A DNA stretch of 64,000 nt from Tubulanus polymorphus. Lineage: Eukaryota > Animalia > Nemertea. Both the position numbers and the translations under genes were made by a program. The notes under the pieces were generated by a model. It saw only the letters and a program-made list of their open reading frames with translations, was not told the origin of the DNA and did not search any database. This document shows, piece by piece, positions 9,001 to 64,000 of this stretch; the stretch's first letter is position 1; each line of letters opens with the position of its first letter. Where the stretch lies: positions 10,714,275 to 10,778,274 of the forward strand of contig NC_134032.1 in assembly GCF_964204645.1 (NCBI RefSeq), written 5' to 3'.

Positions 9001-10086
9001 TTAGAACATAACGCGTCGTGCGAAACTCCGGAATTTACTATCGGTAGAAATCAGAATGTAGAAATTAACGACTGAATTTAACACCGATGAAGTAAGAGCG
9101 AATTGTTGGATTATGGAATATGTTCTGTTATCGTGTATTACGTAACCAGTCATTGATAGAAGTCTCGGTATTGTGGCAGGGATTTCACAGATTAGGAAAA
9201 AAACGACGAGCGCGATGACATTTCTGAGAGCGCGGAGATCGATAACGTTCGTCTGGGCGACGGAATCGCTACGAATAAGAGATCGTCTGGCCACGGTGGC
9301 TCGATATAAAACAAATATCAACAGGAAATTAACGACTACCAAAACGCAAGAAGGAAATATAGTTGTTATGAATATGTACGCATAAAAGTCATAAATCTCA
9401 TAAATCTGTGCAATTATCTTTGTAAGTTTAAATATGTTATAACCTCCATGACTAGTATAAACACGAATGTTCAGTCTGAGACAAGGCCAGCGATAAGAAT
9501 CTGGGAATGTGATAGGCATTATGTAATGCCAGTTTGTCAACGCGCAAAAGATAACCATCGAAATCACGATTGAAAGTAGCGTATTTTTCGTCCAGAATCG
9601 CGCGGCGCGCAACGGAAACGAAATCACAATCAATCGATCAACGCTCAGCAAAACAATCGACCAATTCCTCGATGCTTGAAACCATACATACGTGAAAGAA
9701 AACACGTACGTTATCCAACCGCCGAATTTGAACGAGTACAGAATCCAACCACCGAGATTGCGTCCGTAAATACGAAACATGACGTCAACCAGAATCGCGT
9801 ACCCGTATAAAACCCGTATCGGGTACAAAAACGCGACCGACACGAGAAACAATAAATCGAAGCAAGCTACAAATTTGCAGACGCAATACGATTTCCGTTT
9901 CTTGAAACGTTCGATCGTGACGATTATGAGAATATTAGACGCGATTCCTACCAGCGTTAACGCGCCGTATAGAATTGTACCGACGTAAAACGCATCGATG
10001 AAAAGTGTTTGTAGGTCTGTCGGTAAGGTTTGCGCACAAGACGGCATGATGTGCGATCCATTCTGAACTACAGACGATGTCATCAT
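9001..10086 (-). CDS. Intronless rhodopsin-class (class A) GPCR, FMRFamide-receptor-like
   Basis: 361-aa ORF with 7 hydrophobic helices: TM1 GIASN, TM2 ACFDL, TM3 SVDRLIVISFPL, TM6 FLICEIP, TM7 NSVVNFYI, helix-8 KFR. Confidence 0.9.
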   Translation of the reverse strand: MMTSSVVQNGSHIMPSCAQTLPTDLQTLFIDAFYVGTILYGALTLVGIASNILIIVTIERFKKRKSYCVCKFVACFDLLFLVSVAFLYPIRVLYGYAILVDVMFRIYGRNLGGWILYSFKFGGWITYVFSFTYVWFQASRNWSIVLLSVDRLIVISFPLRAARFWTKNTLLSIVISMVIFCALTNWHYIMPITFPDSYRWPCLRLNIRVYTSHGGYNIFKLTKIIAQIYEIYDFYAYIFITTIFPSCVLVVVNFLLIFVLYRATVARRSLIRSDSVAQTNVIDLRALRNVIALVVFFLICEIPATIPRLLSMTGYVIHDNRTYSIIQQFALTSSVLNSVVNFYILISTDSKFRSFARRVMF

Positions 10087-27657: not shown

Positions 27658-28115
27658 TTTCTATTCTTTCTTCGGTCCTGATTAAGAAAAATATCATAAA
27701 TTGTAATAGAAAATTTCAGGATGAACTCGGTTAGTGGGTTAGAATTGGGAGAGCCAATGTTTTGAGCTGAACGCGATGATTCACTACACTGATTACTGTT
27801 AATTCTGAATTCCAGAGGTTTCGCCCATTCAGCTTGCAAACCAGATGAAACTATACAATACAAATTGAATTACGTTCACTGTTTTTAGCTCAACGCAGAC
27901 TTCTGTCGTCAAATTTTGAATGCACACAAGATTAAATCATTCATACCAATCATTTAGATGGCTGGCTTTCAGATAATTTGTTTTCTGACACAAATTAGTG
28001 CAAATCAATATTAAATGTATCTTCGTACAAATTAGATCTAATGCTACGACGGTTTAAATATGGATAATTGTTTTCAGAAATCTGCTGCGGACCAACCAGA
28101 TCGTTTGAAAACACG

Positions 28116-29102
28116 ATGAACGAATCGCGAATTTATTTTTATGATCCGTTAGCGGAGGTCGCGTGGTACAGGATAACGTACATCACACCTCCGCTAGTCA
28201 TAGTCGGCGTTACGTTCAACGCGATGGTTATCGTCGTATTTCACAAACTGAAAACTAAAAACCGCTGCTTCGATTTACTGAAATACCTCGCACTCGTCGA
28301 CATTATGTTTTTGCTGGCAATGTTCATTTTATTCTCAGTTCGTTATTACATTCACTACGCGTGGTATGGCGAATCTATCAAGAAATTTCCTAATTACCGA
28401 ATTTCCCCGATATACATAAGCATATGGGGAAGTATGTTTTATAAAGGATTTCTGGTGCTTCGCAATTATTTGACCGTCATCATTCAATGTGAAAGATTGG
28501 TAACTATCAGTTTTCCGCTACACGCAAAACGTAGCTTGAAGCCACTTGTCATTATAACGGGTACATTATCGATGTCTATAAGCGCTTACTACCCTATTAC
28601 GATGAGGATAACATCGTCGAGTAGTTACAAAGAGTTTCAATTTGTTCATTATCTATCTCACACTCCCGGGGGCTATGAAACAGTTTACAAAATAATGAAT
28701 AAATACGTTGATCCAATCATTCGCGTTATTACTTCAAATATTCTAATTTTCGTGGCGAAAATAGCTCTCGTCATTGTTTTGTACGTCAAACGTAAACAAC
28801 GCAAAACCTTGTCGGCGTCGAAAATCTCGACGTCTCAAAATCAAACGAAAGCCACAAAGATGGTGCTGTCAATGAGTTTCGTATTCACTATACTAGAATT
28901 TCCAGGTTTCTACGGTAAGATCGGCGGAAAGGACGCGGGTTCTATATTTTACAAAGACGATTCGGTGCATATTTACCAGATCTCGTCGATTTTCAATTCG
29001 TCAGTAAATTTCGTTCTGTATATAATCGTAAACAAACAATTCAGAAACACCTTGTTGCATTTGTTTAAAATCAATCGAGACATCACAGAAAATTCAACGT
29101 GA
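28116..29102 (+). CDS. Intronless class A GPCR, FMRFamide-receptor-like, paralogous to 9001-10086
   Basis: First ATG at 28116 (MNESRIYF). TM1 GVTFN, TM2 LALVD, TM3 QCERLVTISFPL, TM6 FTILEFP, TM7 NSSVNFVLY, helix-8 QFR. Confidence 0.9.
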   Translation: MNESRIYFYDPLAEVAWYRITYITPPLVIVGVTFNAMVIVVFHKLKTKNRCFDLLKYLALVDIMFLLAMFILFSVRYYIHYAWYGESIKKFPNYRISPIYISIWGSMFYKGFLVLRNYLTVIIQCERLVTISFPLHAKRSLKPLVIITGTLSMSISAYYPITMRITSSSSYKEFQFVHYLSHTPGGYETVYKIMNKYVDPIIRVITSNILIFVAKIALVIVLYVKRKQRKTLSASKISTSQNQTKATKMVLSMSFVFTILEFPGFYGKIGGKDAGSIFYKDDSVHIYQISSIFNSSVNFVLYIIVNKQFRNTLLHLFKINRDITENST

Positions 29103-50240: not shown

Positions 50241-52545
50241 GGCCTTATCACGAGTTATCGGCATTTCAGCGCTAAATAGAATTTTACTTTGAAATTTTTC
50301 CCCGGCCTTACCACCGGGAGTTCTTTGAAAGAACGGTTATTTTAGCGCCAATTCTGGTGGGAATTCTACCCAGTTCTCAAGTTCTACAATAGAATTGCCT
50401 TCGTCATAATACCGCGGCAGTACACACCTGAATTCATGTTCGATGAAGTGGAAAATCTACAGACGAAATAATGTCATTATGCTTAATGCAAAAATAATCA
50501 TCATTAAATTTAGGTACTGCATCAATCTGCAGCCAGATCCAGCATCCTCTCGAACACAATCGAAAGGATGCTTTGACAACATCTTTCTAATATTTCGATC
50601 GCGCCCCGCCTTCACAGAGGAGCTTCAAATATGTCGCCAGCAAGAAAGACGCGGGGTTACAGATTACAAATTACATGAAAATCATTTAGTTCATATATAA
50701 GACGGTGTCCACTTTGATGTCACCTTATGTGGGATACCTTCGTGGACTTCACCCCCCCCCCCCCCGACATTTCTTTTCGAAAATAAACTAAAATTCTCGA
50801 CCTTAAATAAATGATTTATCATTTCCCTTTCAATAAGACTTCACGATGGGTTCAGTATTTCTGCCAAGAAATTTTCGATCGAACATGAACTACGAACGCC
50901 AGGCGCGGGCATTCGTGTTCACTTTTCGTCCGTTCGTTCGTCTGCCCATAGACGGAATCCATTATTCTGGGGGAAGCTTTGAAGAAGCTTCGATGGATTG
51001 TCTAGATACTTGTTTTAAACATCTTATCAGTAGCACACTCCCCATATCAGCGCACTCCCATGTTATCGCCCAATGCTTCACTCACCCTCGGGTTGGCCTA
51101 CAGAGCGGAGTTCTCCGACCCTCTCGCTTCAGTATCATCCTGTAGTACAGAAAGGTCAAGATATGAAAATCGTTTAAGAATATGTGAATTACTGAAAGAA
51201 ATGTTTCGGGAGCGGCATCAATTCAGGCATTCACTCGAGACATTTCGATGTTGACAATATGGACAATAAACTACAAACATTTGCCACATTTCATTTGTAG
51301 GTTGTTACTTAAATACATTCATAGGTATTATTTCAATTATGCTACGTGTAAATGCTACCCTAAATATCACACGATACGAACTGTTAACTTAAGGTTTTTT
51401 CACACTAATCACACCGGTGATGTCGTCTGCGATTGTGATCACAGTCTAAGTACACGATATCATGTCGCGCGGTGCGATTAAAGGTTTTACACGCATTACG
51501 CAAATCTTATTTTAATGACATTTCTCATTCACAAAACCTGCCCTACCGGGACAATGATGCAATGTCAGCGTTTGTTTATTTTTGTTATTAATTGTTTATC
51601 TTGACAATGCCACCGACGTTTTTATTTAAATTTTTTAATTTTCTTGTCTGGCAAAAATCCATATGGAATTGTTCCAAAATGACGAAATTGAAGGCTGTTT
51701 AGTACAAATGTCACATAAAAGTGAACACTCTCCCCTCGGCGAGTGAACTCCTGCCCCCTCACAGCTACAGCATGTTCTCCGTGAGTCGGCCAGTCGTTGC
51801 GTTGGTGGTTGACAAAACTATTTGTGAAATTCTACTGAATTCATGGAGAGAAATTTAACAATCATTAGTTTAGTTGCCGATAGGTTGATCATCTGCTGCT
51901 GGTAACGCAATTAACGTAATTGACAGATCCAATGATAATCTTTGTGCTACCTACGAGCTGAGATGATTGTTAGTGGGTGCAAGTGGCCACTGACTTTTCT
52001 AGGATTTCTCAAGTCTAATTGGGCCTCAATTCAATCAGTTAGTTCTTTCTTTGCATTCCTTTCAGGTTCGACTGGTTTTGGCTGTTGCTAGCGTGTTACT
52101 GTTTCTCGAATCAACAAGTTCACGCCATTTGAGATCCAAACATGGGCATTTATTACGTCATCAAGAAGAGCTATGTTTCCACCCACCAGGCCTACGGGGC
52201 ACTAAATCCGGAGATAGAAAATTCCAATGTCCGCCTTACTACCCGTTCGACTTGGACACGGCCCCTCAAGACCAGCGGTCAATCTGCCAATCCTACTGCG
52301 TCAAGTCGATGAACGTCGAAGGCCGATACCCGAAAAAACTCACCGAATACAGATGTAAAGACTGTTCGAACCGATGCAGCGGAACTGAATGCGAGTGCGA
52401 AGAGGTCAAATACCCGGTACCAATCTGGACGGTGGTTCTTGATGAAAATCGTAATTTTGCTGGATATGAATTGAGTTATAGATCTGTATCGGTCGGCTGT
52501 ATGCCGGCGCGCCCGACTTTCAGTCGTTATTTCGACGACTATTAG
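49850..52545 (+). CDS. Interleukin-17 family cytokine, 2 exons, 164 aa
   Basis: Exon 1 49850-49864 (MMMLP|gtaagt) and exon 2 52066-52545 (ttcag|VRLVLAVASVLLFLESTSS..., completing a signal peptide). IL-17 signature RSIC...RYPKKLTEYRC..C...C...CEEVKYPVPIW...VSVGC. Confidence 0.85.
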
Positions 52546-53101: not shown

Positions 53102-54965
53102 TTACTTCCCGGGAACTGGGCACGGAGGCTTCGGCGGCATCGGAGGACATGTCAACGTGGCCGCGATCGTTTTCGCCAGAAAATGCTCGACGTTGACCCA
53201 ATCTTTAATTTCGAAGTAGTTTTCGTTCACCGGACGACTGACAACTTTCTTCAACTGCGCCCTGAATTCCGGCAGTTTTGCTCCGACCCCGACCCCGATG
53301 AGACGGGTGTTGGGGCTTCGTAGTTTCTTCGCCTGTTCGAGCAACAAGCCTTCTACGATATTAACCAACTGATCCCCTTTGAAAATTTCGCCGTCAGTTA
53401 TCAATACGACCGTGTTGTTTACGTCTGGGCGACTTTTCGGCAACATCTGAAAATGAATGAAAATATTGCACATTTAGTCAGGCGAGGGAATCTCGAGGAA
53501 GAATGGCGAAGCTAGTTCACACATCCACCATTCGGGGGCACCACGTGATGGTCAAGATCTTATTGAAATTAACCTACGTATCTCCTCCGACATGTACTAC
53601 CAGGGTTTGGTTGCATCACACGCCAACACAGGGCAAAGGCAACCAAACCCTGGCAAGCGAGGATGCCAGATCATGCGATAATAACTAAATTGTTTATTCA
53701 ATCATAGAATTGTGATAAAATGTACATTTATCAGTACTAAGGTCAGCGATGGACCTCAAGAAATTCAGCGAATTGAAATGGTTCTTTTTAGAAATGTCTG
53801 AATTAACTTCTTCTTCGGATTCTGATTGATAACTGATGAGTCTGACGTAACTCTGGTACTGAGGTAGCATGTGGGCTTAGGTGGTGGGCCATGATCAATA
53901 TTCACCTTTTCTCGGACATTCTTCAGCGCTGTATCTGTATGCGTCTGGCCGTGGTTAATGATTGCGGTGTCGATTTTAGTCACGATATTTTCGACGTCTT
54001 GTGTCGTTTGCAACTCGGTCATTTGTTGAACTATGAGCTGTTCATCAGCTCCCGAAAACATGTACACCCCCACCTGAACAAAAAAACAATTTACACTATT
54101 AATATGGAAATACCGTATGGATAAGATATTCTATCCACTATTTAGAACCCGTGTGAACAGGTTGTTTCGGGCCCAATTAAGCCCGGACCAACGCGGCTAT
54201 TCATGAATCATTACTATTCTATATTCGGCCATTTTTTCTTACATTGTAAATTGCCGGACTATTGCCAACGGGAAGCGCCAAGCCTTTGACGATGTCTTCC
54301 GCCGCTCTCCTTACAGTCGGTATGTGATTTGGCCCTTGGTTATTTATTCCGTTTTCCAAACTCCCGCTCTGGTCCAGCACGAGAACAACATCGTTCTGTC
54401 TCAAACACACTAGACATTTGATAAAATCGTTTGACTATTCTAAAACTTGAAAAATTCAATAGATTGGCGATGTATTAATTAAGTTCTGGCTAAGCTTACT
54501 AATATGTACTGCTTTAGAAAACAAGAACAGGTTGGTATCAATTAAGTAAAGCATTGATACCTATCATTATATCTTATCAACCTCTAGATAACATTCAACC
54601 TTTTTCCAATGGGCCTTTATGGCACTGTTCAGGCCCCTATCATCAATCTACTAATTCTGTCATGTACCGCAATGTTGTATTATATCTAACGGGGTAATAA
54701 TGATGAAATAAGTATATTAATTCATTCCCTTTTGAACGACATAATAATTCAATAAGTATTCATAGCACTGAACGCCTTGTTAGTACATAAGTTTGGAGCC
54801 TTGTTTTACCATGACCGGGAAAAGTATAGAAGCTAACACTGCTTACAAAAATAAACAAGTTCTACCTGGTACTGAGTCTGATAAGACGGGAGGTTCCATC
54901 ATTGCTGCTACCGGCCCGAACACGAACGCGACTCCCAATAGCATCCCGTAGAAGATTACAGTCAT
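53102..54965 (-). CDS. Secreted single von Willebrand factor A (VWA) domain protein, 4 coding exons, 259 aa
   Basis: Exons 54965-54866 (signal peptide), 54409-54243, 54073-53906, 53446-53102; phase-consistent, 780 nt. Complete MIDAS: DVVLVLDQSGS, GQTHT, VLITDG. AATAAA at 53036-53031, 5' UTR donor at 55184, TATAAATA at about 55266-55259. Confidence 0.88.
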
Positions 54966-60353: not shown

Positions 60354-61374
60354 TTACATCGTCGGCCGCAGTTGTTCCGTTTCCTTTTTCCACTTCGAAC
60401 GTCTGTTCTGGAACCAAATTTTGATGACTTTCTCCGACAGGCCGAGTCGATTGACCAGTTCCTCGCGTCGACCGGCGTCGCCTAGATACATATTCATGCG
60501 GAACTCGTATTCGAGAGTTTGTATCTGGTAATTGCTAAAATTCGTACGCGGACTACGGAAACTATGACCGACGCCGACACCTGCGAAAGCGGCAGCGGGA
60601 CTGCTGAATGCCGCCGCGCCACCGACTCCTCCGGACGACTCAACTACAAAAAAGAAAATGTTACAATTAGTGGGAAATTTAGAGATATAACAAGGTGGTA
60701 GCCTGAGACTCAAGTGTCGCAGCTAAGTCAGATTTGGCATGAAGTTGATAAAGTTCATTATTTCCCCAGTCATTTAGCTTCGATCTGTTAAATTTCAACT
60801 CAAAACTGTAGAATTTGTTCCAATTTGCCGATTGCGCAGTCGAGACTTAAATCCAAACAGGATTAAAATTTTCTAGACTTGGTCTTGGCCAACCAGGCAA
60901 GGATATTTTCTTGCAGGGATCAGCACGGTGAAATTATAGTAGGATGGTTTACCCTCATCTATGCTATGACCTAAAAACATTTTTCGCTCAAATGCCAAGT
61001 ACTCTGCCAAGTGCTTTCAGGATTATACCCAACTAAGCACTAATCAGGGCCGGAATCCAAAATCTGTTCAAAAGTAAGTACTTTTTTCGGACTTTGTCAG
61101 ACTCGCTACGAACCCTGCTTACTCAATTCAATTTCTCAATCGAGTTAGACCCCAGGTTAAAGTTAATACCAGTCTATAAAACCGGACTTCCTAGATGATA
61201 TTTCAAACTAACCCGGTTCGGGAGAGTAGTCGTCGTCTTCGCCTTCAGGGTCATAGTTCGGGTCTTCCTCGTATTTTTTCTTCCTCTTATTACTGGCTTG
61301 TTGTTGTTGTTGTGTCGAAAACGGGCGACCACTGAACCGTCTCTCGTATCTATCGTAATGCTGATAAAAATCAC
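60354..61374 (-). CDS. Homeodomain-encoding 3' cassette (2 exons; 5' part of gene outside window)
   Basis: Exon 61374-61213 (162 nt, phase 1 to 1: DFYQHYDRYERRFSGRPFSTQQQQQASNKRKKKYEEDPNYDPEGEDDDYSPEP) joins exon 60643-60354 (phase 1: ...FRSPRTNFSNYQIQTLEYEFRMNMYLGDAGRREELVNRLGLSEKVIKIWFQNRRSKWKKE...*). Confidence 0.85.
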
Positions 61375-62134
61375 CTGCAATTTAAAATCACGTATTTTCT
61401 AAATCTGATGACTCTGCACAAGTACGCCAGGGGTTAGAACTCCAGAAAACTTTCATTTGTTCTCTCTAATTCGAACTTAGTTTAATTCGAAAGGGAAAAT
61501 ATGGACTGTTTTATAGGCGAGTTATGCCTTAAACCCAAGGGTTTATCTAATTGATTATGAATTGAATAAACCCCCCAGGTTAAAGGCTAAAATGGTCTGT
61601 AAAACCACACCAGCAAATTTCTATAAATAGCTTCATGGGATGGAGAGATCCATACCTCCTCCAGGCACTACCCAGAATGTCCATTTGCGCAACAATTGCT
61701 CATCATTTGGTCCATCTCTTGTGGAATTGAACCCATCCTCCTTACCCAAATCAAACTCATATAATCAGGTATCACTCAAACACAGAAAACACAATGGAAT
61801 AAGTCGAGGCAAACTTGATTTATTCAACTCAGAATCTGTACAGGTTCCTGAAGTTCATTGATCTAATGGAAGCTTCAAAGCGTTTATTAAAAGGGACTTG
61901 GTTGATAACATATCCATCGCAATATTGTACTATTGACTTGGTCATAATTGACCCATCACAGCAGTTGATGAGATAATTTTAGGATCTACGATTCCTTAGA
62001 CTTTTTTTTAGAAAAGCAGTATATTACAGTAGGTCAAAAATTATATCCAATCAAGTCATCAGACTGTCGGCGGCTGACAACTCCCACAGTCTGAAAGGTT
62101 GATGGCGATGTGACACTATGAACACACCCTCAGA

Positions 62135-62292
62135 GAGTCCATACATATCCTTGGAGACCCAATACATCCTCAAAGACTCCAAACACACCCTCAGAGAGTC
62201 CCAACACACCCCCAGAGAATCCCAACACATCCTTAGCGTCCCAATGCATCCTCAAAGACTCCACACACACCCTCAAAGAGTCCCGCCAACAC
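62135..62292. repeat. Degenerate ~21-bp tandem repeat (cacaccctcagagagtccc)
   Basis: About 7 copies directly after the zinc-finger stop codon. Confidence 0.75.
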
Positions 62293-62296
62293 ATCT

Positions 62297-62580
62297 TTAC
62301 AGTCCGAGATTCATAGTTTTCAGTTCGTCGAGAATCTGCGAATGGTTTCGTCTCATGTGAGCTTTAAGCGTATCGAGTCGCGTGTACTGAGTAGCGCAGA
62401 TCGCGCATTTGAACGCTTTACCCATCTGCACGTGTTGTACGAGCACGTGGCGTTTTAAATTGAAATTGTTCGCGCACACTTTATTGCACAGATGACACAC
62501 GAACTTATCCACTCCGCCGCCGCCGTTGTTGTCGTCATGGAAATGACCTTGAAGTGGAGCGAATGGATTAAGAAGGTCAC
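62297..62580 (-). CDS. Terminal exon encoding a C2H2 zinc-finger pair (alternative last exon)
   Basis: Acceptor cattccag| at 62580, phase 1, 284 nt to stop: FVCHLCNKVCANNFNLKRHVLVQH-VQMGKAFKCAICATQYTRLDTLKAHMRRNH. Confidence 0.85.
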
Positions 62581-63407
62581 CTGGAATGACAAGGAAGAGA
62601 TAAATTTAGAAGAAAACAACAACGGCTTTTATTGTCTGCTCGCAATGGAAAGGGTTAACGATCAATAGACATTTTCAATATTCGAAAACTCTCAATACAT
62701 TTGCTTCATTCTTTTGTAATTCCAGGTGACCTTCTAGTGTTGCTAGGATTTAGAATAGGCTAAAACAATTTGACTACTGGAGGTAGTTGCCCAGTAGCAT
62801 CAGAGAAAACCCTCAATTCACTAATGTACCTAAATCCAACACTCTCAGATGAAAATGATACTAAGAAGGATGACTGTTCCGTATACACCATGCACCTGAA
62901 CCTGTGCTGTAAGTCTGGTGTTTTGTCGGTCAAGAGATATTTCGGACAAGATTTTGTGCTCTAAATTCTATCCACAGAAGTTCAAGAAGTTGAAAAGACA
63001 ACAAATGAAAACAGAACGACACAATTTAGGAAAAATGATATAAAAATTTTGATTATTATTATTGGGCGAATAGTTTTTACAAGTAAAATTATTTTTCGGA
63101 GAATGACACGATTTAAACTTTATCGATATAGAATTTTCATCATTATTAGTCTCAAAGTTTTACAAATACAACAGCTTAATTTGGATGACCAGGGACTGCC
63201 CAGATATCTTTGAATTGATTAAAATGCGAAAATAAGATAATAATAGTTTACACGGTTCCAGGTTAAATGGACCAAATATTTCATCCGAATTAAGTAAAAA
63301 TCCGGATTAAAAAATTTGAATCAAGCAAGTTCAACAACTGTACAACTGTCATTCTTCGGTGGATATTCATTTCGTTTTCGATTACGGAGTCTTTTTCGAT
63401 CGTTCGT

Positions 63408-63880
63408 TCAATTTTGAAAGTTGTGCATTCCGACGAGCGGAGGAACGGCAGGCGGAGGATGCTTCGAATCGACGTGCGTTTTGAGGTTATCCGACCGCGA
63501 GAAACTACGCTCGCAAAACCGGCACTGATATCGCGTTTTGTCGAACATGTGAACGCCGGCGACGTGTCGATTCAGATTGAACAATTTACTGAACAATTTA
63601 TTACAAATCCGACAACGGAATCGCTTCAGGGCCGGCGGCGCTCCTCGACGACCGTCGCCGAACACCGGCGATCTGATGAACTCGACTTTATATAAAGATA
63701 AGTCCGACGACGTCGACGCAGCGGTCGGCGGATCGAGGCGACCGCGCTCGACGGGATTCTGTAACGCCTCGTACGGATCCGGCGCGCACCGATGACTCAT
63801 CGTCAAAGAATCTTCGTCCTTGTAATCCGTAGTTTCCAGATAAATGTCTGCGTTGTTGCCATGGTGATTGGCTCTCAGTC
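63408..63880 (-). CDS. Terminal exon encoding a second C2H2 zinc-finger pair (alternative last exon)
   Basis: Acceptor tttttcag| at 63880, phase 1, 473 nt open to stop: FRCRICNKLFSKLFNLNRHVAGVH-MFDKTRYQCRFCERSFSRSDNLKTHVDSKH. Confidence 0.87.
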
Positions 63881-64000
63881 CTGAAAAATGTCATATGGAA
63901 ACTACGGATTACTGAAATGCGTATGGCTGCGTGTATTCACTACGTGCATTAGGAAAAATAAAACATTACATGTGTATGAATATAGAAGATGGCTGTCTCT

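Follow-up and report, generated by a model that had tools for sequence, protein, structure and literature searches.

The window, the whole 64,000-nt stretch of Tubulanus polymorphus contig NC_134032.1 analysed here, ends within a tandem array of minus-strand exons. Sequence past the window's end was taken from the same contig (coordinates there are given as window-equivalent), and 101 kb were examined in total. The exon model was inferred from the sequence alone, with exons searched one by one. Nine minus-strand open frames were found, each encoding one C2H2 pair and preceded by a good phase-2 acceptor (exon starts, window-equivalent: 77038, 73239, 71906, 70082, 67506, 66630, 65990, 63880 and 62580). 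Upstream of these cassettes lies a constant part made of two exons: the first has 51 codons and carries an ATG, and the second has 352 codons and a donor (GTAAGT, phase 1) at 81060, 17 kb past the window's end. Because the donor is in phase 1 and the cassettes are in phase 2, any cassette can be joined in frame to the one donor. The features within the window that concern the array are as follows:

63408-63880, minus strand: upstream zinc-finger cassette, stop at 63408
62297-62580, minus strand: last zinc-finger cassette, two C2H2 fingers, phase-2 acceptor, stop codon at 62297-62299
60354-60643 (frame 60354-60713), minus strand: homeodomain exon, complete homeodomain, phase-2 acceptor, exon start 60643

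On this model, the locus is a lineage-specific transcription-factor gene with constant exons and at least nine alternative terminal exons. Pfam searches of the constant part returned nothing in exon 1 and a sub-threshold TFIIA match only in exon 2, with no BTB domain; the constant exon had no homologue in protein databases at E ≤ 1e-5, and the peptide of the 62580 cassette had no words in common with any database protein. The homeodomain frame lies 1.65 kb past the last zinc-finger cassette and is without an in-frame ATG ahead of the domain. Judged by its phase, it may be a tenth and most distal cassette, which would exchange a homeodomain for zinc fingers; alternatively, it could be the last exon of a separate gene.

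Several repeats accompany the array. Tandem repeats with self-complementary units (of gcggggtatccccgtacagtctactgagtga and ggggaatccct-type) are present at 72544-72947 and 75597-76030 (window-equivalent), just past the stops of the 73239 and 77038 cassettes, and a dispersed repeat of ~160 bp (more than 40 scored copies on many contigs, 78-91% identity) occupies 63175-63335, between the stop of the 63880 cassette and the hairpin described below. Elsewhere the window holds two 7TM chemoreceptor-like open frames, a weak IL-17-like frame and von Willebrand A-domain exons (9001-10086, minus; 28068-29102, plus; 52051-52545, plus; 53102-54073, minus).

The hairpin at the 62580 acceptor

The acceptor of the last zinc-finger cassette (AG at 62582-62581, phase 2, 17 of the 20 upstream positions pyrimidines) is embedded in an inverted repeat with 22-nt arms at 62571-62592 and 62714-62735, which are 21/22 (95%) complementary with 121 nt between them. 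An inverted-repeat search thereby confirmed the coordinates, mismatch count and loop size given in the earlier note, and the minus-strand AATAAA that it had placed in the loop (62633-62628) is present. In the order of transcription, the elements of the hairpin and of a second helix discussed below are:

62714-62735, minus strand: 5' (intronic) arm, -155 to -134 relative to the exon start; RNA AGAAGGUCACCUGGAAUUACAA
62593-62713, minus strand: loop of the 22-bp stem, 121 nt, with small local hairpins, AAUAAA, a GU/U-rich run and a likely branch-point motif, CUAAA
62628-62633, minus strand: AAUAAA hexamer, in the loop, 46 nt before the AG
62609-62626, minus strand: GU/U-rich run GCCGUUGUUGUUUUCUUC, just after AAUAAA; also the 5' arm of the second, competing helix
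62571-62592, minus strand: 3' arm, running from the final 10 nt of the polypyrimidine tract across the AG into 10 bases of the exon
62519-62536, minus strand: exonic 3' arm of the second helix, +44 to +61

Both arms lie on the minus strand, which carries the exon, and one of them overlaps the core splice signal: the minus strand from 62592 to 62571 reads ttgtcattccAG/GTGACCTTCT (the slash marks the intron/exon junction). The sole mismatch of the 22-bp stem is a U.C in the RNA, and the remaining pairs are all Watson-Crick. Allowing up to 2 mismatches, the 22-mer is present at the two arms only in the whole 268-Mb genome, and a 201-bp query around the hairpin returned only its self-match in the same genome. 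With no dispersed copies of either the 22-mer or the 201-bp stretch, a MITE or other transposon with terminal inverted repeats was ruled out; a known structured RNA, including a pre-miRNA, was likewise ruled out by the lack of any Rfam 15 match at E ≤ 1 in 61500-64000.

Acceptors were compared by a helix score, taken from the best ungapped helix enclosing or covering the AG (G.U allowed; span up to 350 nt); the threshold was 35, which is the 95th percentile for 1500 positions drawn at random from those 101 kb. At 62580 the scored helix spans -12 to +9, that is, 9 of the 10 exon bases in the 3' arm, and its score was matched by 0/200 dinucleotide shuffles. The duplex energy of the 22-bp stem is -33.2 kcal/mol; in the predicted fold the stem can be extended via two small bulges to ~30 bp spanning the whole polypyrimidine tract (-37.4 kcal/mol). 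Base-pair probabilities for the stem are ~1.0 in both 700- and 1100-nt contexts, and it is the dominant feature of minus-strand RNAs with folding z-scores of -4.9 (186 nt) and -4.0 (261 nt). The 62580 hairpin exceeds chance expectation. The mean unpaired probability of the region from -20 to +2 is 0.22, against a median of 0.43 and a 5th percentile of 0.28 in pseudo-acceptor controls, and the CUAAA branch-point candidate in the loop is unpaired in the predicted fold. Before the partner arm is transcribed, the 5' arm is predicted to be only half paired, and the stem can therefore form once the acceptor emerges.

A second helix at this acceptor pairs 62626-62609 with 62536-62519 and brackets the acceptor, with a score of 27-30 that varies with the search window; it was reached by 0/200 exon shuffles (p = 0.005). 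This helix and the 22-bp stem are mutually exclusive save as a pseudoknot.

Helices at the other acceptors of the array and in paralogous arrays

The helix scores of the nine zinc-finger acceptors, in the order of transcription, were:

exon start 77038: 38
exon start 73239: 42
exon start 71906: 26
exon start 70082: 35
exon start 67506: 21
exon start 66630: 28
exon start 65990: 36
exon start 63880: 44
exon start 62580: 47

Six of the nine acceptors therefore score ≥ 35. When the flanks of each of these six were dinucleotide-shuffled 200 times, no more than 2 shuffles reached the score of the acceptor in question. Among pseudo-acceptors elsewhere, 3/159 score ≥ 35 (Fisher p = 2e-7). A blind scan of 60-82.5 kb recovered these six as nearly all of the unique non-repeat helices ≥ 35 in the variable region; the remaining helices at this level belonged to tandem repeats, to GC-rich repeats in the coding sequence of exon 2 and, in one case, to the 3' region of the 62580 cassette. 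The constant exon's acceptor (score 25) is below the threshold, as is the homeobox acceptor (60643, score 27), where the earlier note had likewise seen no equivalent stem. Intrinsic acceptor strength was considered as an explanation and rejected, as the pyrimidine count does not follow stem presence.

The stem arms are unrelated in sequence from cassette to cassette, and two layouts recur. In the first (77038, 73239, 63880), the stem joins the exon to the tract or branch region; in the second (62580, 65990, 70082 and weakly 66630), it joins the acceptor or early exon to a distal arm in the intron. The sister hairpin next to 62580 is of the first kind:

63822-63912, minus strand: sister hairpin enclosing the 63880 acceptor, arms at -32 to -11 and +37 to +58, -27.9 kcal/mol

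Its sequence is unrelated to that of the stem at 62571-62735, and the claim that neighbouring cassettes carry unrelated acceptor stems beyond chance, made earlier from these two alone, now extends to private stems at 6/9 acceptors. For five of the six strong stems, the transcribed strand gives a higher score than the opposite one (sign test not significant); the exception is the 62580 stem, which scores 47 on the transcribed and 49 on the opposite strand and thus has no strand signature.

The 51-residue N-terminal exon (82699-82851 window-equivalent; L014:2199-2351, minus), itself without a Pfam match, is matched by more than 30 genomic paralogues, with identities of 34-71%, and, by this sequence comparison, is an unrecognised conserved module heading these arrays. 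About 17 copies of it occur at 11.41-11.65 Mb of the window's own contig (loci L015-L025), an interval that also contains dense runs of C2H2 cassettes. We sampled 76 cassettes in 110 kb, for 68 of which the best acceptor is in phase 2; many paralogous cassettes have the acceptor context ggattctcatggctctttgcAG/GT in common. From its sequence, the interval looks like a set of alternative-terminal-exon arrays on a scale exceeding insect lola.

Wide helices at the paralogous acceptors reached ≥ 35 in 4/69 cases, which is the background rate and differs from the 6/9 of the array studied here (Fisher p = 6e-5), and the stem enrichment is therefore not general to such cassettes. Stems at other cassettes, which the earlier note had made the check on its reading, are thus found within the array (6/9) and only weakly in the paralogous arrays of the same genome (4/69 wide helices). 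In a narrower test, in which -45 to -1 was paired against +1 to +70, 12/69 paralogous acceptors were at p ≤ 0.01, an enrichment due mostly to one conserved motif pair, ggttctcatggc with gccatgggaacc, of which gccatgggaacc is exonic and encodes PWEP. Own-versus-cross arm complementarity for this motif pair was not significant (p = 0.11).

The motif pair defines a subfamily of cassettes, in which a tract-proximal ggttctc(a/g)tggc is complementary to the exonic gccatgggaacc at +10 to +44. The pairing gives 12-16-bp stems bracketing the acceptor (examples on the minus strand include L015:1309-1413, L015:3162-3266, L020:762-866, L020:1395-1499 and L025:4844-4948), and some outer extensions of these stems vary between copies (CATC/GATG, AAC/GTT).

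A genome search with a sister cassette did not have the 62580, 63880 and 77038 cassettes among its matches. By this measure the cassettes are old and divergent, and it would follow that the stems are not duplication scars.

Proposed function of the stem and alternatives

Our preferred reading, to which we give a probability of about 0.55, is that the 62580 stem acts as a cis-acting attenuator of the 3' splice site and is part of an array-wide setting of last-exon choice; this reading is built on the predicted folds and on the distribution of helices along the array. The intronic arm would be transcribed 143 nt ahead of its partner, and once the acceptor of the last zinc-finger cassette emerges, the arms would zip into a 22-bp duplex in which polypyrimidine tract, AG and exon start are all hidden, while the branch-point candidate, the upstream cassette's AAUAAA and the GU-rich run would stay exposed in the loop. 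A duplex of such strength over the U2AF binding site should hinder U2AF and lower or delay use of the acceptor; nuclear helicases may melt such stems. Because five sister acceptors carry private stems of unrelated sequence, we read the 62580 stem as one unit of array-wide attenuation, which would set each cassette's share against the first-come-first-served advantage of proximal acceptors. The 62580 stem in particular would tip the balance among three outcomes: termination of the 63880 isoform at the poly(A) site in the loop, use of the 62580 acceptor, or read-through to the distal exon. We infer that the stem forms in vivo, that it affects splicing or cleavage and that it is under selection; the use of the exons as modelled and cleavage near 62610 are predicted. 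The structure-based control of last-exon choice proposed in the earlier note is in this way partly supported, in silico, by a predicted stem that covers the tract, AG and exon start with a probability of ~1, by the enrichment along the array, by the position of the upstream cassette's hexamer in the loop and by the lack of such a stem at the homeobox exon.

A neutral origin, which we consider unlikely, is nonetheless a serious rival and the strongest of the alternatives. A replication template switch or small inverted duplication would have copied the acceptor region in reverse 121 nt upstream; the resulting stem would be present in the DNA and perhaps in the RNA, unselected and with no regulatory role. 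The arms, at 21/22 and purely Watson-Crick with no strand asymmetry, look as they would after a young event, and the stem could indeed be young; other unique inverted repeats of 16-20 bp exist elsewhere in the 101 kb examined, and database searches with the cassette peptide and the constant exon yielded no homologues from which evidence of conservation could be drawn. However, neutral copies should not cluster at acceptors, and here 6/9 acceptors are embedded in stems against 2-5% of controls. The weak point of a neutral origin is this sixfold concentration at acceptors whose cassettes are old and divergent. A 22-bp duplex over a polypyrimidine tract is expected to affect splicing even if it arose neutrally, and if the stem did turn out to be such an inverted copy, some mutational mechanism would have to account for the clustering at acceptors.

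The loop raises a further alternative, that the stem serves chiefly in 3'-end formation of the 63880 isoform, either with the loop presenting AAUAAA and the GU-rich run or with the RNA ends held together, and that masking of the acceptor is secondary. No AATAAA/ATTAAA other than the looped hexamer occurs in the 828 nt from the 63408 stop to the 62580 acceptor, and this hexamer may serve the 3' end of the 63880 cassette; directly after it follows GUUGUUGUUUUCUUCU, which is GU/U-rich and a possible downstream element. The 65990 stem likewise encloses the only hexamer in the 225-nt gap past the 66630 cassette, and the shared layout is suggestive. In human transcripts, 3' ends are reported to be enriched inside conserved complementary pairs (Kalmykova et al. 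2021, PMC8052449). The chance of hexamers landing in both loops by position is nevertheless ~0.15 x 0.42 = 0.06, which is not compelling, and the other four strong stems enclose no hexamer; we regard this alternative as improbable.

Least probable is that the upstream arm acts alone as the plus-strand acceptor of an antisense transcript, or that the duplex is an editing substrate or diverts splicing to an AG of the same phase located 33 nt further downstream (exon start 62547): a second phase-2 AG does lie at 62549-62548, just 3' of the stem, and the plus strand reads ttgtaattccag/GTGACC, a good acceptor by construction, but this likeness is a trivial consequence of the arm being complementary to the 62580 acceptor, and the plus-strand frame closes after 11 codons with no coding feature thereafter.

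Attenuation of the acceptor by the 62580 stem can be carried one step further, to a proposal that we hold only tentatively. Each DNA-binding-domain exon might carry a private "lock" in the form of a unique stem that covers or surrounds its acceptor, in some cases with the poly(A) signal of the preceding cassette in the loop. The locks together would form a structure code that fixes isoform proportions and, as they all differ in sequence, could be opened one by one by trans-acting factors or small RNAs. If true, such private locks would be a form of tandem terminal exon choice distinct from docking-site/selector competition.

Comparison with known systems

In insect genes of the lola, mod(mdg4) and broad type, a constant 5' part is joined to alternative 3' exons encoding zinc-finger pairs. 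The present gene, as modelled from its sequence, would be like these in having one constant donor followed by tandem terminal exons with a C2H2 pair each and a single splice phase; unlike the BTB genes lola and mod(mdg4), its constant part is without BTB or any other Pfam domain and without detectable homologues.

Modulation of alternative splicing by RNA stems that cover splice signals in cis is known from the long-range structures of Drosophila (Raker et al. 2009, PMC2724269), and among human conserved complementary regions, 43% of those that overlap a polypyrimidine tract block the acceptor as well (Kalmykova et al. 2021, PMC8052449). As in these masking structures, pairing in the 62580 stem is intramolecular, and one arm overlaps the acceptor together with its polypyrimidine tract. 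There are two differences: the Drosophila and human structures are defined by cross-species conservation, whereas the 62580 stem is known from one genome, and in the present array several neighbouring alternative terminal exons of a single gene each have a private stem.

Competing pairings between a docking site and selectors have been described in the 3' variable regions of Drosophila PGRP-LC, CG42235 and Pip (Pan et al. 2018, PMC6191721), and balancer structures in Dscam1 (Dong et al. 2022, PMC8791459). The array stems resemble both in purpose. Unlike in docking-site/selector systems, each stem is local and unrelated in sequence to the others, with no shared docking site, and its expected effect is repression of an acceptor, not activation by proximity. 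A search for a shared docking site, in which the 4-kb constant intron was compared with all inter-cassette regions, gave only low-complexity or repeat-derived matches. The best docking candidate, and the only strong complementarity of this intron to the cassettes (80748-80708 with 70742-70709 and 60857-60828), was ruled out because it comes from a high-copy dispersed repeat.

That candidate belongs to a young repeat in the constant intron (80650-80800 window-equivalent; L014:150-300), ~320 nt after the donor, of which there are 1720 candidate copies, many of them 94-98% identical. It is complementary over 30-34 nt to inverted copies at 70709-70742, upstream of the 70082 cassette, and at 60828-60857, ~190 nt upstream of the homeobox acceptor. 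The predicted pairing has a docking-like geometry but is transposon-derived.

Exon choice from long tandem arrays is understood in few insect genes only, where a shared docking site competes for selectors. If the stems described here work, they would represent a second and simpler logic, in which each acceptor is attenuated independently and coupled to neighbouring poly(A) sites, and they would provide a spiralian example, from a gene family in which DNA-binding domains are exchanged on a very large scale.
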